A stretch of DNA of 64,000 nt, from NCBI GenBank assembly GCA_009859145.1, contig VRVR01000016.1:112594-176593 (forward strand). Direction: 5' to 3'. Numbering within the stretch: position 1 is the first letter of the stretch; every line of letters starts with the position of its first letter. Origin of the DNA: Andalucia godoyi And28 (Eukaryota > Protista > Jakobida). Below the pieces are notes generated by a model. That model did no database searches, was not told where the DNA came from, and saw only the letters and a list, made by a program, of their open reading frames with translations. Positions 846 through 58,740 of this stretch are shown here, in pieces. Position numbers and translations under genes: made by a program.

Positions 846-3305
846 ATGATTCGCGTATTCCGGCGATGGTTCACTTCGTATGAGCACGGGCAAATTATAG
901 AGTTTATGCAGAATCATGGGCCTCGATTGGGTGTGCTGGATGGTGCGATGTGTGCTTCGGACACTCGTATGAAGGTGTATTCGAGAGATGGAGTGCTGCA
1001 TCGAATAGATAGGGGCATGGTGATCCACGTCTGGTCGTCTTCTCACGGGCTCTATACTCCGGATTCTCTGAAAGATCTTCACCAATCCGCCTCTGGATTC
1101 TTGTTCTACGACTTTGCAGATCGAATTTCAAAGGTATCAAGCGTGTTTGTCAGAGAAGAAGTTTCGCAAATGATGGAGTCTTTTCACAAGGCGTGTACAT
1201 TGCAATCCAGGCAATACAGAGCAAACTCAGAGTCCTGCGCGAAGTTCTTGTTTGGCGAAGCAGGGACTCCGGTGCACACGTATCTCGCTGCAAAGCTACT
1301 GGGCTCCGATTTTCGATTCTCACGAGCGGAGCCGGAGAGAGGGTACAAAGCGCTGGTGCAGAACGCGGTGTTTGAAAAGATAAAGAAGCGGTTTGCGGAG
1401 CGAATGTCCAGCTGGAAGAACGGCGGTCGGGCAGAGCCATTCTTGATCGAGGCTCGCGATGTGCCGTTTCTAGCGGCCGTGGATCGGCTGATCCAGTTTC
1501 ACCGCCACCCAAGATCTGTCGACGTCAGGGGATTAACGGTCCACGAGGATTCTCACTCAAATTACACGCAGTCCGCCGAAATGAGGAACGCAAGGGAGCT
1601 TCTTGCTGCATTAGACATTGACGCCACCGATCCGTCTGCATTGCAGCAATTTTTAGAGTTGATCGATTGGTATTTGCATCCTTTGCGACCTTTGGACCAC
1701 CGAACATTCTATTCATCGACAGGCGATAGAGGTCCTTCGCCTGGTATCGGATCACAAGGAACAAAAGGTACGGATGCTGCAGTTGGTGCGAAAGACGTGG
1801 GCGGCCCTACTTCTCGTTCCGTGTCCGGGCTGGATGACGTGGAGAGTGCTGTTGCGGACGAATCCTCCTGTTTGGAAGAGGCGGTCACACCCATGGATCA
1901 CGAGTTGATTGATCAGCACGCAGAAGCTGTGCAATCGGTGTCGAAATCCTGCCAGCCATTTTCGTATGCATTCCGTGTGCCCGCTGCTGATATCAAGCCC
2001 TCCGTTCCATTCACGGACTCGGTGCAGCGAGTGACGGTCGGGGGTCCGGTGTACTGCATCGATCGCCGGGCGCTAGGATCCCTCGCAGACGACGCCTTTT
2101 CTGTAGAGTTGCCGCACATTTTGTACAAAGAAAAGGAGATGGCTGACCCGGATTCTCGATGGATATGGAGCCATGTGGCAGATGTAACCAGAATTGTACG
2201 GCCCGAATCGCTGCTTGCCAAGTATTCTCTTTCTCGTCTGCGAACAATCTATCCAATGCATGGCACCCCGTCGTTTATGCTTCCTGCCCAACACGCTGCT
2301 CAATTAGCACTGAGTACGACTTCCAGAAACCACGTCTTGTCGTTTGGAGCCCGAATCAGCTCCCGGGGCGAACTCCTCAATTACAAAGTTCAATGTTCTG
2401 ACGTTGGCCCCATTCAGCGGTACTCGTTTCAGGAGGTCATGCACCCGTCTCTGTGCAATCCTCAAGCTCTGGAGCCACAATTTCGAAATGCGGTATTGGA
2501 AGGGTTCGAGCTACTGAACAGTTGGGTGCTGCGAGATCCAGTGTTGCGAGAACTTTCCAGAATGCCCTCGTTGTCAGAGAAAAACGCATTTGTCAATGAC
2601 TCCCCAGCAGCACGTGTGCGTTCTGATTATTACAACCCGCAACTGTTTGTTCGGTTGCTTGGCACCATGGCTGCCTATGTTGCAGATCTGTTCGCTTCGG
2701 ATCGTCACGTTGTGCTTCCGCGAGTGCCTGCGATCACTGTTACAGCGCCTCTTCGACGATTCCAAGATTTGTGTGCGCACATGCAAGTGCGGTCTGTTCT
2801 GGAGGGTGCAAAACGCCCTCCTTTCTCTCTCGAAGAAATCCGCAACGTGGAGCGCTCTGTCATGGAGCAGTCGCGCCGTATCCGCGATGCATCATTCATG
2901 CACAAACGAGCACTGGCCGTGGATGGATTTCGACAGCTGTGTTCTCTCTTTCGCTTGGTTTCAGAATCCGATGAAGTGTATCTGCCGGCTGTTGTGCTAC
3001 GTACAGAAGCCCCCCGTTTGGGCTACCCCATTTTTAGACAACGAGTCCTCAAAAGACCGGCGCCAATGTCCAACATGCCGGCCTCTGCGACCTCAATCAA
3101 TACTCCGTCCTCGTCTGCTTCATCACCACGATCTTCTGCAGATGAACCATATTTGATTATCACTGCTGGAGGATGTTTTGCAACCATTTGGGTTGACAGG
3201 AACCGCGTTGCTCTTGAGCCTAACCAGAAGATTATCATTCGCGTCAAGGCACTGTCTGTGCGAGAAGGCGAGGTGGAATGCGAGTATGTCTCCGACATGT
3301 ACTGA
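846..3305 (+). CDS. RNase II/RNB-family 3'-5' exoribonuclease-like protein, Dss1-like, probably mitochondrial
   Basis: 819-aa ORF. RNB motifs VYCID...ADDAFSV, SHVADV and TAPLRRFQDL. The N-terminus MIRVFRRWFTSY resembles a mitochondrial presequence. Confidence 0.75.
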   Translation: MIRVFRRWFTSYEHGQIIEFMQNHGPRLGVLDGAMCASDTRMKVYSRDGVLHRIDRGMVIHVWSSSHGLYTPDSLKDLHQSASGFLFYDFADRISKVSSVFVREEVSQMMESFHKACTLQSRQYRANSESCAKFLFGEAGTPVHTYLAAKLLGSDFRFSRAEPERGYKALVQNAVFEKIKKRFAERMSSWKNGGRAEPFLIEARDVPFLAAVDRLIQFHRHPRSVDVRGLTVHEDSHSNYTQSAEMRNARELLAALDIDATDPSALQQFLELIDWYLHPLRPLDHRTFYSSTGDRGPSPGIGSQGTKGTDAAVGAKDVGGPTSRSVSGLDDVESAVADESSCLEEAVTPMDHELIDQHAEAVQSVSKSCQPFSYAFRVPAADIKPSVPFTDSVQRVTVGGPVYCIDRRALGSLADDAFSVELPHILYKEKEMADPDSRWIWSHVADVTRIVRPESLLAKYSLSRLRTIYPMHGTPSFMLPAQHAAQLALSTTSRNHVLSFGARISSRGELLNYKVQCSDVGPIQRYSFQEVMHPSLCNPQALEPQFRNAVLEGFELLNSWVLRDPVLRELSRMPSLSEKNAFVNDSPAARVRSDYYNPQLFVRLLGTMAAYVADLFASDRHVVLPRVPAITVTAPLRRFQDLCAHMQVRSVLEGAKRPPFSLEEIRNVERSVMEQSRRIRDASFMHKRALAVDGFRQLCSLFRLVSESDEVYLPAVVLRTEAPRLGYPIFRQRVLKRPAPMSNMPASATSINTPSSSASSPRSSADEPYLIITAGGCFATIWVDRNRVALEPNQKIIIRVKALSVREGEVECEYVSDMY

Positions 3306-9194: not shown

Positions 9195-11702
9195 CTAGTC
9201 TGCAACAGATGCGCCCGCAAAGGATGACGATGGGAGGGATTTTCGTGCACGATCGATGCAGGCCGCAATCGTCTCGTTCAGCAGCGCGAGCCACTCGGTC
9301 GTCTCCTCTTGCGTGGCGAGCTTGATCTTTATGCCGTGCTTGGCAGACGAGACCTGCAAGAACCCACTGTCCGTACTGGATGCGGCACACGAAATAAGCG
9401 GTAGAAACAGCTTCTTGTTGGCAGAAACATCCACATGCAGCAAAACATCAGTCATCAGAACAATTTGAATGGAGTCCGAGGAGCTGTTCGTGCAGCTTGC
9501 TTCACGGATAAGTCCGCGATGAGGCTGAACAAGGTCCTTTAGTTTCAACTCCGTTTGCAATTGCACGAGACGCAACCGGCCCTCGGCCTCGCGCTTCTTT
9601 TCATTGCAGTATGCCGCAACCTGGTGAATGGAATCCTTTGCCTTCAACAAATCCTTGTAATCGACATACGATTCGTCCGAGTGCTTGACCAGCTCTTTGA
9701 TCAAGAGCTCATACCGCGGGATTCGTTGAATCGGGGTGATCAGCAGGGACTCGAGCGTGTTGTTCCTGCAGGAAGGGTGTTTTTCAGCCTGGGCAATAAA
9801 CCTGAAGAACCGAGAGTTCTTCTTTTTCAGCCTGGAAATGGCATCCATCTGGGCCATGTATCCGTTGATGTAAGCAGTGTACAACTTGAGCGACGGAATG
9901 CGAGCATTGATGGCACGAACGATCGAGTTGTCTCCTCGTCCCTTAATGAGATCATCCAGAAACTCCTTGTTAATCCGGAGCAAGATTTCGATTTGTCCAA
10001 AAATGCTGGATACCTGATCTTGCGTAAGAATATCTGTGCCACGCAACGGTTCAAGAAACTGGGTCTTGATTGCGTCCAAAATCGACACGTAATTCTTCTC
10101 CGTCGAGATTAGCTCGTCAAAAACATGAGGAAGCGTTGGAAAATTGAGAAACGGGTTCGCAGGAACCGGCGCCTGTTCTCCCTCTTGCTGAGAATTCGCA
10201 ACTTCATCTTGCAAGACCGAGTCGAAAGTCGTCTGATTCTCGACTGCAGGGGTTTTCGATTTTTCTGGGACAAATGGAGAGGTCGCAGCAGGATGCGGTG
10301 GCGGTGGCGGTGGCGGTGGCGGTGGTCCAATCGATGCTCCTGAGCCTCTACTGTCATCCGATTGATCAACAGATGTCGCCGACGGGCTTTCGACGCTTGC
10401 AGAACAAGATGACGACGAAGATGACGGCAACGCAGCATCGTGGGGCGGCGCGAATCTCGAATTTTGATAACCTTGGTGCAAATGGAAGGGGCTCAGGGAC
10501 GACGAATTGCGGTAGCTCGAAATCGTGGAGGAACGCATGCGTTCACGAGGTGCAGTGGAGTGACGATTGGGCTCTTGATGGCGGTCGATCTCTTGAGACG
10601 GAGAGGAAGCACGGGCTGGAGCTTGCGGGGTGCTGTCGTGCTGTCTGACCTGCACATCCGCAACTGCCGCGCGCTCTTGGAGTTCTCGTGCACTTCGTAG
10701 CAACTTCAATTCCGAAGAAATCGAAATGAGCGCCGATCGCAATTCCTTGTTTTCCGATTCCAAGTCCCCAAGACGGCTGGCCATCCTTTCCATCTCCGCT
10801 TTATGCGCGTCGACGAGCGTATCCCGGACAATTGTACTCGGAGGGGACGGTGTTCTTGCAGAGCGCGGATGTCTGCTCGAATACTCCGATGCCGGTCCCA
10901 CAGACTGCATGTTGTCATTGGCTTGCTGCACAGACGATGCTGACCGGCCCGAGTATATTCTTGATGTGGTGTCCGCACTTGTACTTTTCCCAAAATAGGC
11001 TTGCTCCTGTCGCCCGACGGAAGAGGGCGACTGGGAGTGGAGTGCTCTGTCAGGAGGCGATACTTCTCCTTCCTTGGAGGCATTGGAGAGTCCGTAGGAA
11101 TCGGGCGTCCACTCAACGTGCTGCACGGGAGAGAACATGCCGAATTCGGAATCCCTTCTCTGCTGCGCAATAGCCACAGGAACTCGATGTCGGAGAACAT
11201 CTACTACAATGTCTCGAAGATGAGAATCAACTGCCTTTCTATGCGACGCCATGGTGTCCAATTGACTGTACATTTTCCAAATACCAACCGCAGATTGCTG
11301 GACATGCGGAACATCTCTCCCTTCGATTCCCCCGCTCAACGCCAGCTTTTTCACTTGCATTTCTGCATTTCTTGACTGCTCTAGAAAATGTTCATATCGA
11401 TGCAGTGAAGAGACAAACCCTGCTTCCCTCCGAGTCCGTTGAGACGGCTGTTTTGACTGTGCATCCTGTTCCAATCTCCTCGCAGCCATGCTCTTGATTC
11501 TAAAACGTTCTCTCTGTGCACAGTAATTGATCCAACACGAGTCGTAGTGTCGAGAAACCGCAACAAGATTCTCGGGATCCTGCAAAAACCGCAGACACAA
11601 ACGAAGAAACTCGTCCACATGAAACCGATATTGATCACTTTGCACATTATAGCGATGAAGCTGCTCGATGAACCGAAATTCAACATCCTTCCGTGCATCC
11701 AT
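9195..11702 (-). CDS. RhoGEF (DH-PH) with a long disordered, Pro-rich central region
   Basis: DH motifs ELISTEKNYVSIL and LESLLITPIQRIPRYELLIKEL, followed by a PH-like region. PolyPro tract. Confidence 0.92.
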   Translation of the reverse strand: MDARKDVEFRFIEQLHRYNVQSDQYRFHVDEFLRLCLRFLQDPENLVAVSRHYDSCWINYCAQRERFRIKSMAARRLEQDAQSKQPSQRTRREAGFVSSLHRYEHFLEQSRNAEMQVKKLALSGGIEGRDVPHVQQSAVGIWKMYSQLDTMASHRKAVDSHLRDIVVDVLRHRVPVAIAQQRRDSEFGMFSPVQHVEWTPDSYGLSNASKEGEVSPPDRALHSQSPSSVGRQEQAYFGKSTSADTTSRIYSGRSASSVQQANDNMQSVGPASEYSSRHPRSARTPSPPSTIVRDTLVDAHKAEMERMASRLGDLESENKELRSALISISSELKLLRSARELQERAAVADVQVRQHDSTPQAPARASSPSQEIDRHQEPNRHSTAPRERMRSSTISSYRNSSSLSPFHLHQGYQNSRFAPPHDAALPSSSSSSCSASVESPSATSVDQSDDSRGSGASIGPPPPPPPPPPHPAATSPFVPEKSKTPAVENQTTFDSVLQDEVANSQQEGEQAPVPANPFLNFPTLPHVFDELISTEKNYVSILDAIKTQFLEPLRGTDILTQDQVSSIFGQIEILLRINKEFLDDLIKGRGDNSIVRAINARIPSLKLYTAYINGYMAQMDAISRLKKKNSRFFRFIAQAEKHPSCRNNTLESLLITPIQRIPRYELLIKELVKHSDESYVDYKDLLKAKDSIHQVAAYCNEKKREAEGRLRLVQLQTELKLKDLVQPHRGLIREASCTNSSSDSIQIVLMTDVLLHVDVSANKKLFLPLISCAASSTDSGFLQVSSAKHGIKIKLATQEETTEWLALLNETIAACIDRARKSLPSSSFAGASVAD

Positions 11703-11872
11703 TTGCGTTTCTGGTCCACCGTTTTGTATTATTTTTTTTTTTTAAATTAAAAAATAAAAAATAAAAAACCAAAGAAACTGCGTGGACCAATCTACTCGCT
11801 CGTCTTGTCACCCCAAATTTCCAATCACGCAGCAGCACATCGATGAATGATGCAATAATCGAGCAAATGTAT

Positions 11873-11873
11873 G

Positions 11874-11906
<33 letters not shown>

Positions 11907-11912
11907 ATGTAT
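11873..11912. repeat. (TA)n(TG)n microsatellite
   Basis: Read directly from the sequence. Confidence 0.85.
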
Positions 11913-11941
11913 ATAAATCATCCTACACATTGTGGACAAAC

Positions 11942-12496
11942 CGTTGAATAATAGCACGTCATTGTCGTGCATATGGAAGCACACATAAACAGACACGGTC
12001 AATACTGGCCGACACCAGCACGTTTTATTTCACAGGCATTCGTGCTTACGCACGCTCGGCCAAAATTCAGCTTGCGACACAGGCCCTGCATTTTCGACAC
12101 TCTTTAACGCAGCATCCGTAGCCATCTATTCTATCATTCGTTGGGTCCACTTTTTAATTCAAATAGGGGCGTGAGTGCGCTGGGATGACGCATTCGCCTA
12201 CGCCTACGCCGCTCGATACAGGGCCTCCTAGGTCCCGCAGACCTCCTAAGAGACCGCGTGTCACTACGCCTGCTGCTAGGGCCGTCAGAATCAAAATGCA
12301 CCCTTCTCAGGAACAACGCGTCACGCTGAGAAAGTGGCTCACCGATTGATCGAGATTGGGAACGGAGCGCGGATCATTTATCTGAAGAATGCCGTGAGGC
12401 GTATTGGGGGGCCGATCCCCTTCCCGGCAACGGGATGCAAGGATTGAATATGCACGTCTGTTCGTAGATATGCATGTTCAGTGTATAACGTAGGCG
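11942..12496 (+). mobile_element. Non-autonomous, internally deleted IS607/Fanzor(TnpB)-derived element, copy 1
   Basis: Homologous to 47462-48013 in inverted orientation over the full length. 12185-12340 translates to ...PPKRPRV..AARAVRIKMHPSQEQRVTLRKWL (TnpB N-terminal HTH-like). This is joined at ~12341-12344 to IDRDW (12345-12359), then +1 frameshift, then NGARIIYLK (RuvC-III-like). CG occurs at both boundaries. Confidence 0.85.
12345..12496 (+). ncRNA. Putative omegaRNA scaffold (Fanzor/TnpB guide RNA); guide would continue into the flank beyond 12496
   Basis: CCCG-GCAA-CGGG GNRA hairpin and a 16-bp UUCG hairpin (12445-12480) directly after the remnant stop codon, followed by the conserved end TCAGTGTAYAAYGTAGGCG. 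The 5' limit is unknown. Confidence 0.55.
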
Positions 12497-12849
12497 TGCT
12501 TTACAGTAAAACAAATTTTTTTTGGAAGCTGTAGCTCCAAGCATCAATTCGCAACGGCTAATCGAAAACATTCGAACACGGATTCTCTCGACGATCAAAA
12601 ATAATAAGAAAAAAACCATAAAGGCGTTTTTTCCGTTTCATTAATATATTTTATTTTTCTTATATCTCTCTGTTTTTGCACAAAAAAGAGCCTTTTTCAT
12701 TTTTCACTTGTTTTTCTTTTCTTTTTTAATTTTATCATTGTATTATTTTGTTGAATCGGAATTTTGTTCTGGTTATTTCTTGTTATTTATTCTAGGAGTG
12801 CTGCTGCTGCCGCCTGGCTTCTTCTGGTCTCGTCGCGGTGTAGGAGGGA

Positions 12850-15989: not shown

Positions 15990-16109
<120 letters not shown>

Positions 16110-16123
16110 AGGGAGCATAGGCG

Positions 16124-24874: not shown

Positions 24875-25893
24875 CCTCGTCCCGAAACGGGAAGCTCCAT
24901 CGTCAACACATACATGCACACATATACACACGCGCACACATACATATACATACAGGTCAGCGGTAAAAGAAAACAAAAGGATTTATAGACAAAGGGTACA
25001 TGGTACAGACGGGTCACTGCACAGTGAGCAAAAATATTTGGTCAATATTGATCATGACGTAAAAAATACGCATTTCCACGATTTTCGTTTTCCACCTTTC
25101 CCGAAATCCCAACACACAATCCTCATGTTTCTCAACTGCAAGAAAACAACAGAAAAATGACTCGGAAACGCAAACTTCCAGGAGGTCGCAAACCCGACAA
25201 GAAGCGCCCTAGGAAGACTTCCAGGCCCTTCTTCCTACGTCGCTCGAACGGTGCCTTGGATAGACATTGAACGCAAAAAAGGTTGCTTGCGCAGCATCGA
25301 TCTCTGGGACGATGCGTATAACAACTGCGTCTTCCTTTACCAGAAACGCAATGTTCCTGCAAGATCCTGAAAGTTGGATCGACATGTGTTTCCGAACTCC
25401 AACTCCAGGTTGACGAAGAACACGAGACATTGTCCGAAACGCTTCGTCGTGAAACCGCGAGACAAGCATTCCGATCATCGCAGCTTCAAGGTTCCCAAGA
25501 ATGGTGGAAAACCTCCCGTCCAATTGTCGGTCGAGGAAGGTGCTGCTTTCTGGTCCACTTTCATTCCCGGAAGCACCATCAAATTGTGGAAACGAGGAAG
25601 GGAGGCGGAGCGTGAAATTCGACGGCTACGTGAGATGGAGCGTGAGAAACCCCAAGGTGGCTGTAACGGCTCGGTTTTCAATGTCCTGCGCACGTGTTCC
25701 ATTTCCTATGTCCAAGGACGATACTTTTTTGATTGTCCCAGTCGCGCGATCCATGGCACCACCCAAGACGAAAACCGGGGACATGGTTGTCATCAACAGC
25801 TGCGATGGCGGAGGCCGTGTCTTCCAGACTGTTTATGATGGCTGTGGGAATTACAAGGAATATGGGTTCTCCGAGGGCGACCCTTGACGCTGA

Positions 25894-26388
25894 TCAAACC
25901 CCAGAAACGCTATCAGAAATTGCAATCGAAACGCGCCACCGAGACGACTTGCATGTCGAAAAACGGCAAGACGGAATGCCCGGCGCAAGATGCGCAACAT
26001 TTCGCACCGCATTCAGAACATGCAACATGATGGGCATGTACGCATTGCCAAGGCGGTGTGCCAGAAACAGAGTGAAGACGGCACAGTGTCCCCACGCGGG
26101 ATGCACGTATTCGCAACCTCGTGACCAGCATGGTGCGAGAAACGTTGCGATCTTGGGTGTGGAATGTATTGGCATTGGAGTCTGCCAACACCCAAGCCCC
26201 TTTTCATCCTCCTCGTAATAAGGGGGAGGTGTTTGCGTGGGACTGAAAACACCCAACAACCTACTTGTTGTGGGAAGCCCTGAACCATTTTCATGGAAAA
26301 GGGAGCAGCTTCGCCATAACGTCTCCAGTTGGCGACTTTGAGACTCCAATTGAACTCTCCGGTTTCCATGCGCAGATTTGAAACTCAT
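25894..26388 (-). CDS. Possible small hypothetical protein
   Basis: 164-aa ATG-initiated ORF starting just downstream of the ABCG stop. No recognisable motif. Confidence 0.3.
   Translation of the reverse strand: MSFKSAHGNRRVQLESQSRQLETLWRSCSLFHENGSGLPTTSRLLGVFSPTQTPPPYYEEDEKGLGCWQTPMPIHSTPKIATFLAPCWSRGCEYVHPAWGHCAVFTLFLAHRLGNAYMPIMLHVLNAVRNVAHLAPGIPSCRFSTCKSSRWRVSIAISDSVSGV

Positions 26389-36643: not shown

Positions 36644-36734
<91 letters not shown>
36644..36734. repeat. (CT)n(GT)n microsatellite directly after the RUS1 stop codon
   Basis: Read directly from the sequence. Confidence 0.95.
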
Positions 36735-37094
36735 ATGTGCGCGCGCGTCTGTCTCATTGTATCCCAATGTATTCTATTGATTGTACATTTTTTTCTCCAC
36801 TCTTCAGACATACTGGGAACTCAAAACATGACGGAGATCGCCGGGAATAGAACAATAAGAATCTCAAAAAGCCGCTGTAACCAAATTCTGATTTCTGGCG
36901 CCCAACAAATTCGGAATTGGCGCGTATGGAAAATTCCGGGCTTCTATTTCTCTTTCGTGTCCTCGGGACATTTCCTGTCTTTCTTTCTTTCTTTCTTCCT
37001 TTCTTATTGAATTTCCCCCCTCTCTCTTTCCAATCTTTTCTCCTTCTCTTTTCTGTCATCTTACGATCTCGTTGGAGCCAATCCTTTTATTTAA

Positions 37095-41024: not shown

Positions 41025-41255
41025 ACATTGGAAATCGTGACCGCTGCCACTTATTGTGATATGATGAAGCAGTCTGAAGCGCACGCAAAGAAAAACACTG
41101 CCACGCGCCATGCGCATGCGTTTGCTATCTTAGCACCTCCGTCACACGATGCCGATTCGTTTCGCCCCATTTTGATCATGAAGTCCCTATAAACACGCAG
41201 CCGTGTTGCATTCTCGCACAGCGACACTCATTTCTTATTTTTATTGTCCATGCAA

Positions 41256-41405
41256 CGCAACATCTATCTTGGGAACGTCTCTCATGCCGAGGGGGCGTGT
41301 TGGGGCCTACCCCCCTTCCCAATCATGCTATGCATGTTGCTGGGTTGCAACATTGATTATAGGTGATCGGTGATGATTATCCGTGGTCAGTGTACAATGT
41401 AGGTG
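41256..41405 (+). mobile_element. Diverged 3'-end fragment of the same Fanzor/IS607-like family (copy 3)
   Basis: 41256-41270 translates to RNIYL. GGCGTGTTGGGGCCTACCCCCCTTCCC resembles copies 1 and 2. The 17-nt end TCAGTGTACAATGTAGG (41387-41403) is identical to the 47.5-kb copy. Confidence 0.75.
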
Positions 41406-41571
41406 TGTAATCGTGATGCATTTTCCGGTTTCTTGTTTATTATTATTAAATCAACCAATTAATATTATCGTTATTGCCGCTGTTTGATTGGCTGGTTGGT
41501 TGTTTCGTTTCGTTTCATTCCGTCCCTTCTTCTTTTTACATAGACGGGATACGAAAAAAAGAACTTCGTTG

Positions 41572-46136: not shown

Positions 46137-46648
46137 TTCTCGGATTTCCTCTTCTTTCTCTTCTTCTTCTTCTTGCACTTTTCTGTTCTGTCCGTTTTGC
46201 TTTTCTCCCAAAAAATTTCAGTTCCTCCTCCTCCTCCAACAACAACAACACCAGGATACTCGCCTTTATAGAAAATCCGAATCAAGACGCTTGCGAATGA
46301 ACGAATGAGCGAAGAAGAAATGGACAAGCACGTGCTGGCAAACGCCATGTTGTTTTTACGCCAGCCCAAATCGGCAACAAACAAGGTTATGTTCGGTTTG
46401 TTAGATTATTTTAAATTTTATTTTATTTTATTTTTTTAAAATAATATATTTAATTTATTATTCTGGTACGTTGCGGTGAGCAGGAGAGACTGGAGAGAGG
46501 TAGGAGCATTTTGTGTATAGTGCAATGCGGCCGGAGTGCCGACTGTCGCCTGGATCAGAGCTGCACCCCTTAGCAGCCATCTGTGGCTTTTGAGAGGGTT
46601 TCAGGTTTTACTGCTAGCCACGCACAAAAAGCAGTGTTTGGGAGACAT

Positions 46649-46824
46649 CGTCTGCATTGCACATGGAGCATGCCTAGTCATTGCAGCCCCTCCAGCATCC
46701 GAACCGAATGTGAATTCAATTCAGAAGGGGTGGTGGGCCTCAGTACGCTGAAGCGTTTTCGAAAGTAGATATTGCGCGCACCTCTCCAATCTCGGTCCAG
46801 ACATGTCGAACAGGACGGGGCCAT
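46649..46824 (-). mobile_element. Diverged 3'-end fragment of a related Fanzor/TnpB element (copy 4)
   Basis: Translates without frameshift to PSCSTCLDRDWRGARNIYFRK. CCCCTTC...GGAGGGG stem. The end CATGTGCAATGCAGACG matches the family end at 14 of 18 positions. Confidence 0.7.
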
Positions 46825-47149
46825 CGGAACGACGATGAATCGGCGTGAATGGGAAAAAAAAGAAGACGAGTGGAACAGCATTGTCTGAAATGACTGGGTG
46901 AGTGGGGTAAGTATGGTAAATTACATTTACTCAAGACTGCATTTACAACCACAAACTACTATTACTGCTACACCGACTGACGGAAGGACGGACAAGCCGC
47001 CTGGCTGACTCGAAAAGAAAGAGTGTCCCGACCCCTCGAGATCTGGAAGTGGAAAGCGGAGTGGAGGAGAGGCGGCGAAGAGACAGGATGTTGTGGACTG
47101 CGGAGTGACTAGCGGACATGCCCGTCACCGCCATTTCATATTGAGTGAA

Positions 47150-47461: not shown

Positions 47462-47612
47462 CGCCTACATTGTACACTGAACATGCATATCTACGAACAG
47501 ACATGCATATTCAATCTTGCATCCCGTCGCCGGGAAGGGGATCGGCTCCAACACGCCTCTCTGCGCTCTTCAGATAAATGTTCCGCGCTCCGTTCCCAAT
47601 CTCGGTCAATGT
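47462..47612 (-). ncRNA. Putative omegaRNA scaffold, copy 2
   Basis: CCCG-GCGA-CGGG GNRA hairpin and a fully paired 16-bp UUCG hairpin (47478-47513), followed by the conserved end. The 5' limit is unknown. Confidence 0.55.
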
Positions 47613-48013
47613 GCGAGCCACTTTCTCAGCGTGACACGCCGTTCCTGAGAAGGGTGCATTTTGATTCTGACGGCCCTAGCAGCAGGCGCAGTGACACGCG
47701 GTCTCTTAGGAGGTCTGCGGGACCTAGGAGGCCCTGTATCGAGCGGCGTAGGCGTAGGCGAATGCGTCTTCCTAGCGCACTCACGCCCATATTTGAATTA
47801 ATAAAGTGGAACCAACGAATGATAGAATAGATGGCTACGGATGCTGCGTTAAAGAGTGTCGAAAAAGCGGAGCCTGTGTCACCGGCTGAATTTTGGCCGA
47901 GCGTGCGTAAGCACGGATTCCTGTGAAACAAACAGGCTAGTGTCGGCGAGTATCGACCATGTCTGTTTACGTATACTTCCATATGCATGACAATGACTTG
48001 TCATTATTCAACG
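47462..48013 (-). mobile_element. Non-autonomous, internally deleted IS607/Fanzor(TnpB)-derived element, copy 2
   Basis: Inverted homolog of 11942-12496. Translates to PPKRPRV..RAVRIKMHPSQERRVTLRKWL / IDRDW / NGARNIYLK with the same junction and the same extra G. CG at both ends. Confidence 0.85.

Positions 48014-58094: not shown

Positions 58095-58158
<64 letters not shown>
58095..58158. repeat. (TG)n microsatellite abutting the SLC35B1 start codon
   Basis: Read directly from the sequence. Confidence 0.95.
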
Positions 58159-58159
<1 letters not shown>

Positions 58160-58740
58160 ACGTTAATGATACAGAGAGAAGAGCGGGAATGACAGAGAAA
58201 GGGAATCAAAGTCTTTCCAAAGACCTTCTCAAATTCGTAGGCTGCGGTTTGTGAATAAAATTGACTATTAAAGTATTCAGAGAGGAACAACGACTCAAAA
58301 CCAACAATTATGATGATGATGTACTTCCCAACTTCCAAAAGAGCAGCGTTGGCCATTGCAGTCTTTTGGTCTTCGCGTTTCGCGGACTGTAAGGACGTGA
58401 TTCGTCATACCAGACAGGACAGGCAAATAGGGGACTTTTGATTTTGCAAGACGCTCCCACTTCAACATAATCAAAGAACCGTAAATTTTTACAAAAAGCG
58501 TCATCTCCGCGACTACCAGCAGAGGTGCTAGAAGCAGAAGCAGGGAGCGGTGCAGGAGACGGGATTTGAGAAAAGGGATTTTAATTTTAAATAAATAAAT
58601 AAATAAATGAAAAGAAGAAATCTCGGGCTCTCTGAATTCAATTTACGGAAGCGACCTTATGGAGTATCCCGGCGAAGAAGAAGTAGAAGGAGATCAACGG
58701 AACGTGGGAGGGGAAAGAAAGAAAAACTCGACAACAGAAG

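Follow-up and report, generated by a model that had tools for sequence, protein, structure and literature searches.

A probable protein-less derivative of a Fanzor2-type element, found in two copies on a nuclear scaffold of the jakobid Andalucia godoyi

Fanzors are eukaryotic RNA-guided nucleases related to TnpB and Cas12. To our knowledge, their natural role in eukaryotic genomes and the mode of IS607-type movement there are still largely inferred. Here, we describe a 555-bp intergenic element at positions 11942–12496 of a 64-kb stretch of scaffold VRVR01000016.1 (389,962 bp; assembly GCA_009859145.1) from the nuclear genome of A. godoyi—this whole stretch is called the window in the following. 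The element, copy 1 of what we term family A, is very probably one of two copies of a protein-less, non-autonomous derivative of a Fanzor2-type element, which lost ~1 kb by an internal deletion and moved after this deletion; mobilization in trans by an IS607-type machinery and a guide-RNA role of its 3′ part are suggested by its architecture.

Fanzor2/IS607 elements in eukaryotes, decayed IS607 fragments, and protein-less satellites of TnpB in bacteria are already known. IS607-like fragments are found in nuclear genomes of Amoebozoa, fungi, and stramenopiles, where they were read as horizontally acquired (Gilbert and Cordaux 2013, PMC3673617). In bacteria, PATEs are protein-less, non-autonomous derivatives of IS200/IS605 elements that often still encode omegaRNAs (PMC10055086). 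The nuclear genome of A. godoyi comprises ~20 Mb and is compact and mostly intron-less; short subtelomeric scaffolds of transposon- or viral-like sequence were omitted from its assembly (Gray et al. 2020, PMC7050145). In a literature search, we found no report of a Fanzor in Andalucia and none of protein-less Fanzor2 derivatives that retain a guide module, and the supplementary tables searched from the 2023 Fanzor surveys mention neither Andalucia nor jakobids.

Family A resembles Fanzor2/IS607-type TnpB elements—of the mimivirus L79/R104 type or like Acanthamoeba ACa-1/2—in its relic N terminus (a basic patch and HTH_OrfB_IS605), its relic C terminus (DRDW-NGARNIYLK), a structured 3′ noncoding region reaching up to the right end, and the lack of terminal inverted repeats (TIRs) as well as of target-site duplications (TSDs). 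Unlike in these elements, the nuclease core is deleted, no protein is possible, there is no tnpA, the apparent crossover dinucleotide is CG instead of the GG of IS607, and the host is a jakobid. With PATEs, family A shares transposon ends combined with a guide-RNA-type module, the presence in several copies, and a presumed reliance on transposase and nuclease in trans. However, its host is eukaryotic, its lineage appears to be that of IS607/Fanzor2 (serine recombinase) and not that of the Y1-HUH IS200/IS605 elements, coding relics are retained, and the guide role is putative. The eukaryotic IS607-like fragments are likewise scattered ORFB-type sequences with stops and frameshifts, but they came to light through protein similarity to ORFA/ORFB and were mostly regarded as decaying fragments or segmental duplicates (PMC3673617), whereas the ends of family A are defined, its copies share a deletion junction, and there is evidence that it moved after the deletion. 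Finally, family A is short, noncoding, internally deleted, multicopy, and intergenic like eukaryotic miniature inverted-repeat transposable elements (MITEs). The term "MITE-like", which an initial annotation of the window had used, hence fits in this looser sense; without TIRs and a TSD, family A is not a strict MITE.

Relics of a Fanzor2-type gene

A blastn search with copy 1 against the window returns a second, inverted copy of 552 bp (copy 2, Table 1). Both copies are 91.0% identical over 556 columns—or 91.8% without the five gap columns—where the initial annotation had estimated 85–90% by eye, and the differences comprise 45 substitutions, of which 31 are transitions, in addition to the gaps. 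As seen in the alignment and by blastn, the similarity starts at CGTTGAATAAT and stops at GTAGGCG, abruptly on both sides, and the flanks of the two copies are unrelated. Stops and frameshifts in every frame leave family A with no coding capacity. A small functional open reading frame (ORF) was considered and rejected, as the ATG of the relic is lost in copy 2 (difference at 12186). Bacterial contamination was rejected as well: the elements lie among ordinary eukaryotic genes on a 390-kb scaffold, and the remaining ORFs of the window are, according to a Pfam scan, such ordinary genes, for example, for DNA polymerase delta and RhoGEF.

The full-length relatives were reached by a degenerate-pattern scan of viral contigs, which gave the C-terminal motif of the relic in two giant-virus contigs. 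The giant-virus contig L001 carries a classical IS607-type unit, in which a MerR-HTH/resolvase tnpA precedes a tnpB ending in ...VDRDWNGARNIYLKSFL. A search with this TnpB led to a protein family annotated with the HTH_OrfB_IS605, OrfB_IS605, and TNB zinc-ribbon domains. Its closest member to family A is P0045, a 437/583-aa protein of Fanzor2 type from the JGI metagenome 3300042934, which bears both ...AVRVKMYPTAEQRITLRKWL... and ...MDRDWNGARNIYLKNAERRVGAYPLPG... and is encoded at two loci: L003 and, on another contig of the same metagenome, L013, a second full-length copy with 96.9% identity. Pfam places PF12323 (HTH_OrfB_IS605; HTH, helix-turn-helix) at residues 40–71 of P0045 and PF07282 at residues 343–409. 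Two fingerprints mark the Fanzor lineage, a DPG within RuvC-I and a glutamate that precedes the zinc finger by six residues (PMC10711439); P0045 shows both, as D226-P-G and as E368 six residues before a zinc finger made of CGKC 374–377 and CPQC 392–395. Its best relative of solved structure is the mimivirus L79 Fanzor2 (PDB 9b0l, E = 3.6e-26), with ISDra2 TnpB at 1e-7, and it is closer to proteins of eukaryotes and viruses (Lipomyces, the amoebozoan Phalansterium, R104-like; 42–47% identity) than to cyanobacterial TnpBs (35–38%). These sequence traits—two fingerprints, closer eukaryotic and viral proteins, and L79 as best solved relative—place P0045 in the Fanzor lineage.

Against the whole 64-kb window, tblastn with P0045 detects the N-terminal relic (residues 24–59) with E = 4e-7 in copy 1 and E = 1e-6 in copy 2, and the C-terminal relic with E = 3e-3 and E = 4e-7, respectively; in copy 2, the latter is 91% identical to P0045 residues 404–425. 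In both copies, the two matches are collinear. A hidden Markov model (HMM) of the N-terminal region of the family finds 12212–12340 at 14.4 bits (independent E-value, i-E, 7.6e-6) and its equivalent in copy 2 with an i-E of 1.1e-4. The peptides themselves had been described by the initial annotation in a frame missing from its ORF list, as PPKRPRV with an HTH piece and IDRDW plus NGAR(I/N)IYLK fused at ~12341; translation agrees with this description, and their assignment to the N-terminal HTH and the C-terminal RuvC-III of a TnpB/Fanzor2 gains significance through P0045 and the N-region HMM.

The N-terminal relic, whose frame ends in ...RRPPKRPRVTTPAARAVRIKMHPSQEQRVTLRKWLTD and a stop codon, overlaps with its match to P0045 the PF12323 domain of this protein. 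Just upstream of the HTH piece, PPKRPRV occupies in the tblastn alignment the same place as PRKRKEKK in P0045 and might represent a nuclear localization signal (NLS); NLSs in Fanzors are documented (PMC10530073). On the C-terminal side, IDRDW is read at 12345–12359 in the +1 frame, and NGARIIYLKNAVRRIGGPIPFPATGCKD followed by a stop—the NGAR(I/N)IYLK... segment—at 12361–12447 in the +2 frame. Reading IDRDW and NGARNIYLK after the N-terminal relic hence needs two frame changes: one at the junction at 12341–12346, identical in both copies, and one at an extra G at ~12360, which both window copies bear (GATTGGGAAC) and where the intact relative L003 reads GATTGGAAC. The RuvC-III motif of the relic (RD + NGARNI) also terminates the members of the protein family. 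Overall, the equivalents of P0045 residues ~24–59 and ~398–425 are retained and ~338 codons (~60–397) are gone, in line with the initial proposal that nearly the whole nuclease was lost. The deleted part comprises WED/REC, RuvC-I, RuvC-II, and the zinc ribbon, including the counterparts of D226 and E368. Both family A copies thus lack the RuvC-I with its DPG motif and the alternative RuvC-II glutamate before the C4 zinc ribbon. Since the DPG-bearing RuvC-I is present in P0045, family A is a derivative of a Fanzor2 gene and not a Fanzor2 gene itself.

The same junction and the same frameshift between unrelated flanks show that the gutting preceded the formation of the second copy. The events can be ordered as follows. 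An internal deletion of ~1 kb removed codons ~60–397 of a Fanzor2-type nuclease gene, whereby the NLS-like linker with the initial half of the HTH became joined out of frame to the tail comprising RuvC-III and the C terminus. The +1 G frameshift arose next, and the already gutted element then inserted at one or more new sites. The opposite assumption, that a single pseudogene fragment was segmentally duplicated or that the resemblance to TnpB is a matter of chance, could draw on the small number of family A copies seen, namely two on a single scaffold. It is, however, effectively refuted: the similarity ends within a base on both sides, the right stop coincides with the terminus of unrelated full-length copies, a further family (family B, see below) also occurs as two sharp-ended copies at unrelated sites, and chance does not account for collinear N- and C-terminal matches with E of ~1e-6 to 4e-7 in both copies.

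A few features of the full-length relatives may be noted alongside. The relative on L013 spans ~1.8 kb and is Fanzor-only, with an ORF of 583 aa and no tnpA. Its N-terminal extension contains a PFWN...SW.P...SWF module that is present in 75 of 236 family members, has no Pfam model, and is missed by the truncated database gene call of P0045. The layout of this module is PFWN, ~15 aa, LWLPT, ~25 aa, and SWFS/T before the HTH (L003 1–405, L013 333–770); no trace of it was found in the family A copies. On L001, the tnpA ORF (2536–3141) is overlapped over ~600 nt in another frame by an open N-terminal extension of the tnpB/Fanzor2 ORF (region 2522–3141). This extension carries PFWN...SW.P...SWF as well and matches the L003 extension in BLASTP with E = 8e-7; the overlap looks unusually long.

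Element ends, mode of movement, and the 3′ module

The right end of family A connects it directly to the full-length elements. In blastn, the last 130–160 bp align to the 3′ end of the P0045 gene on L003 in matches of 74–82% identity, and the right-end module is 72–78% identical to L003 over 127 aligned columns. The terminus ...CAGTGTAnAAyGTAGGCG is common to family A, L003, and L013. As the mutual homology of L003 and L013 stops one base after GTAGGCG, this is a true element terminus.

The architecture of the ends is reminiscent of the IS607 family, whose traits include the lack of TIRs and TSDs (PMC6188088). The motif CRTGCATAT lies 21–33 bp and AACAGACRYG 35–56 bp from each terminus, in inverted orientation between the two ends. 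Inverted 7–10-mers common to the first and last 100 bp exceed shuffles in copy 2 (p<0.001) and in copy 1 (p ~0.01–0.03), and so does ATATGCAYGT, which occurs twice in the right end, 20 bp apart. Family A has no TIR beyond CG, and there is no TSD at any of four insertion sites, two of family A and two of family B. CG marks the left and right termini of family A as well as the right terminus of L003 and L013, whereas family B shows CG...TG. From the lack of TIRs and a TSD, the CG at both ends, and the shared subterminal motifs, we infer that an IS607-type serine recombinase (TnpA) mobilized the element in trans with strand exchange at CG; the label "IS607-type" is thus drawn, with due caution, from the end architecture and the protein clade.

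An element derived from Fanzor2 might also have been moved by other means: by a cut-and-paste transposon with a captured Fanzor2 ("Fanzor2*"), for which the flanking CG would be a 2-bp target duplication, or by a recombination or retro-type process. The capture of Fanzor2 by non-IS607 transposons is documented (PMC10711439, PMC10530073), the window yielded no TnpA, L013 carries a full-length relative that is Fanzor-only, and the CG on both sides can be read as such a 2-bp duplication. Nevertheless, there is no TIR beyond this CG and no variable target duplication at any of the four insertion sites, the repeated subterminal motifs with their ~20-bp phasing resemble the ends of the IS607 family (PMC6188088), and the protein clade sits in giant-virus IS607 elements—for example, L001 with tnpA directly upstream. 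We, therefore, give a mover of another type a low probability and retain the IS607-type mobilization of a gutted Fanzor2 element.

The last ~145 nt of family A form a structured 3′ part, which corresponds in position and length to the reRNA of an IS607 TnpB of roughly 150 nt (PMC10711439). The consensus fold was calculated with RNAalifold from copy 1, copy 2, L003, and one further copy. In this fold, 95.8% of the cells are paired, compared with 32–56% for slid partners; compensatory changes occur in six pairs, and the covariation score of the real alignment was not attained by any shuffle. For copy 1, stem-loops are located at ~12389–12403, ~12408–12420, and ~12423–12434 (CCCG-GCAA-CGGG with a GNRA loop), and an 18-bp hairpin at 12443–12482 just precedes the terminus ...GTAGGCG. 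In the long hairpin, 18 of 72 cells are G.U pairs, which would be mismatches on the other strand and, hence, favor an RNA of the sense strand. The fold z-scores are −4.1 for L003, −3.2 for copy 2, and −2.2 for family B. The module has no match in Rfam, but a covariance model built on it recovers five modules on the scaffold (Table 1). Thus, the suggestion of the initial annotation that the omegaRNA region was kept holds for the 3′ structured region, and a guide-RNA role is proposed by us on top of this: the module may be a reRNA/omegaRNA scaffold, whose transcription—if it occurs—would continue into the right flank and yield a guide RNA. By analogy with what is thought for bacterial PATEs (PMC10055086), a Fanzor2 supplied in trans could use such a guide to cut empty sites, that is, for homing.

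Outside the scaffold, the covariance model gives a weak match of 13.9 bits (E = 0.14) at L004 5013–5139. This position coincides exactly with the 3′ end of a TnpB on a viral contig, which shares 38% identity with P0045, and the match may represent a distant homolog of the same RNA module. The right-end pattern TCAGTGTANAAYGTAGGCG has three matches in metagenome contigs and two in viral contigs, all of which are chance matches to the pattern alone.

The divergence between the two family A copies is distributed unevenly, with 15.3% in the left end, 3.6% in the central 250 bp, and 11.5% in the 3′ part (chi-square p = 1.6e-4). For family B, all 6 of 6 differences fall in the first 140 bp. Such a pattern may stem from gene conversion, from constraint, or from some mutational peculiarity of the left ends. 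It also bears on the idea that a part of the element was co-opted by the host or is held alike by selection, be it in the role of a promoter or regulatory module or in that of a noncoding RNA gene. Next to the uneven divergence itself, the location of both family A copies between divergently oriented genes and a 10-mer in the conserved center that is common to three element families would speak for this. In the window, GACACTCWTT occurs four times compared with 0.4 expected occurrences, and all four lie inside these elements and in element orientation. Yet no ORF is conserved in the central block—copy 2 has lost the ATG, and replacements are among the changes—and a short gene-conversion tract between copies that are 35 kb apart explains the pattern equally well. 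Moreover, the same pattern in family B points to a property of the element and not of one locus. Hence, co-option appears very improbable compared with a mobile Fanzor2 derivative.

Further relics on the scaffold

At least four further Fanzor-type relics lie in or adjoin the window (Table 1). Family B is represented by two copies, one in the window and one to its left, which differ at 6 of ~366 positions (98.4% identical) and thus form a younger family. Their ends are sharp, CGYTGCCACTT...CAATGTAGGTG, and their insertion sites are unrelated. The 3′ module of family B is ~35% diverged from that of family A, yet it adopts the same fold. Over the 9 kb to the left of the window, neither blastn nor the protein HMM gave a match; the family B copy there was detected by the covariance model alone. 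One of the family B copies starts 17 bp past the stop codon of the DNA polymerase delta gene.

Directly downstream of copy 2, family C consists of a C-terminal TnpB piece, which the family HMM finds at 46678–46881 on the reverse strand with 11.8 bits (i-E 2.5e-5), and a diverged right-end module. The 10-mer GACACTCTTT is found again at 47018–47027, between this relic and copy 2, which suggests that the intervening 580 bp are part of family C; copy 2 may thus abut or sit inside another relic. At 25501–26152, a frameshifted core relic matches positions 226–337 of the family HMM at 26.2 bits (i-E 1.1e-9) and also positions 417–440. The RuvC-I of this relic reads SCDGGGR and not DPG, as of a different, more distant family, and the covariance model detected no right-end module after it.

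Table 1. Coordinates of the family A element, its parts, and related features in the window or, where indicated, on the adjoining locus L012
Feature	Position	Strand	Remarks
Family A copy 1	11942–12496	+	probable 555-bp protein-less deletion derivative of a Fanzor2-type element; blastn against copy 2, tblastn with P0045
Left end	11942–12041	+	terminal CG 11942–11943; subterminal CGTGCATAT 11966–11974 and AACAGACACG 11988–11997, both recurring inverted near the right end
Internal motif GACACTCTTT	12096–12105	+	common to families A, B, and C
Fanzor2 N-terminus relic, MTHSPTPTPLDTGPPRSRRPPKRPRVTTPAARAVRIKMHPSQEQRVTLRKWLTD and stop	12185–12349	+	frame 0, 54 codons and stop; translation, tblastn, HMM
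Basic NLS-like PPKRPRV	12242–12262	+	K-R-x-R pattern just upstream of the HTH
First half of HTH, RAVRIKMHPSQEQRVTLRKWL	12278–12340	+	homologous P0045 segment is PF12323
Internal deletion junction	12341–12346	+	P0045 residue ~59 joined to ~398, ~1 kb gone; same in both copies
Fanzor2 C-terminus relic, RuvC-III and C-terminal tail	12345–12447	+	translation, tblastn, L003 alignment
Right-end module (candidate guide-RNA/reRNA scaffold and recombination end)	12371–12496	+	RNAalifold, pair counts, covariance model, shared terminus
Covariance match, copy 1	within 11942–12496	+	135.6 bits
Frameshifted TnpB/Fanzor core relic	25501–26152	+	pre-RuvC-I region, RuvC-I, helical region, then RuvC-III PRDQHGARNV; family HMM
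Family B element, ~366 bp	41042–41406	+	other left part, same terminal CGYTG, GACACTCATT motif, same right-end module, no coding relic
Covariance match, family B	41257–41412	+	123.7 bits
Family B second copy	L012 4539–4904, ~4.3 kb left of window		covariance model; sharp ends
Covariance match, family B left of window	L012 4755–4910		118.6 bits
Family C relic beside copy 2	46642–46881	−	TnpB C terminus ...PSCSTCLDRDWRGARNIYFRK, then diverged right-end module; may reach 47461
Covariance match, family C	46642–46775	−	18.1 bits, E = 0.013; directly after RuvC-III relic
Family A copy 2	47462–48013	−	same deletion junction and same +1 G as copy 1, other flanks
Covariance match, copy 2	within 47462–48013	−	147 bits

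Counterevidence, possible activity, and consequences

Several observations weigh against a mobile Fanzor2 derivative as described above. On the protein level, a direct Pfam scan of three short peptides from the relics gave no significant match (best PF07282, positions 50–60 of 60, E = 0.18), so that of the profile check proposed by the initial annotation only the route via P0045 yields significant homology; the relic peptides are too short for a direct match. A search with the chimeric 88-aa peptide against 5.8 billion proteins returned nothing at E ≤ 1, and, therefore, no predicted protein in that database—including the proteome of this organism contained in it—is near-identical to the relic. 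The closest full-length relative is environmental, the next best match to P0045 is only 55% identical, and viral contigs searched with P0045 gave relatives at 38–40% identity only. On the level of the ends, nothing matches the left 245 bp of family A, the N-terminal extension of the full-length relative included: when the 5′ 245–260 bp were compared by blastn and local alignment with L003, L013, family B, and the region beside copy 2, no similarity rose above shuffles except a short shared motif. The initial claim that both ends were kept is, thus, demonstrated for the right end, with the terminus common to L003 and L013, while the left end is defined by the two copies only.

Also, the 3′ fold of copy 1 is not better than that of shuffles (z = −1.4, the weakest of the four, with the intact L003 as the strongest), and the long hairpin is built of near-palindromic direct repeats (ATATGCAYGT twice, 20 bp apart), so it could be a DNA array for recombinase binding instead of, or besides, an RNA stem. 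Finally, tblastn with one giant-virus TnpA (locus L001) found no TnpA relic in the window, and no intact Fanzor was found either there or within 9 kb on the left side. Of the prediction that a Fanzor system exists or existed in this genome, the past tense is borne out by the further relics, and a present-day system stays hypothetical.

Today, copy 1 itself most likely persists as an inert relic: its divergence from the sister copy amounts to 8%, its fold is weak, and the ATG of the relic is already lost in copy 2. For the genome as a whole, a more far-reaching scenario can be drawn, which we regard as tentative and rather unlikely: A. godoyi may harbor a still-active Fanzor2 and recombinase—perhaps in the omitted subtelomeric scaffolds—and the protein-less satellites A, B, and C might act as guide-RNA genes that borrow nuclease and transposase in trans. 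This scenario is suggested by the 98.4% identity of the family B copies, by successive deletions that always spared the last ~145 nt, and by stems kept through compensatory changes across lineages that are ~35% diverged. If true, an active system with guide-only satellites would be the eukaryotic counterpart of bacterial PATEs, and if the younger family is indeed still active, A. godoyi would offer a small, nearly intron-free organism for studying Fanzor homing.

Coming back to the inert derivative, a gutted Fanzor2 element that moved after the loss of its nuclease implies a mobilization in trans inside a eukaryotic nucleus. What repeated deletions have left, whether by selection or by chance, is the 3′ module of guide-RNA type together with the ends. 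Surveys of the RuvC domain miss such relics, and, hence, the history of Fanzors in protist genomes is probably under-counted. To trace the parent element in the 20-Mb genome, the right-end covariance model can be used along with both consensus ends.

Some minor observations concern microsatellites. A (TA)n(TG)n microsatellite (11860–11929) directly adjoins copy 1, and the full-length relative on L013 adjoins a long (CTT)n tract (~40–290) on the same, left side, which may be coincidence. An Rfam scan of 11700–12800 gave only microRNA noise from microsatellites (near 11877–11997). Long dinucleotide microsatellites at 15990–16114 and 36644–36736 show up as mutual "inverted repeats" in the window, and a further site with a (TG)n tract among the window microsatellites lies at 58095–58170.

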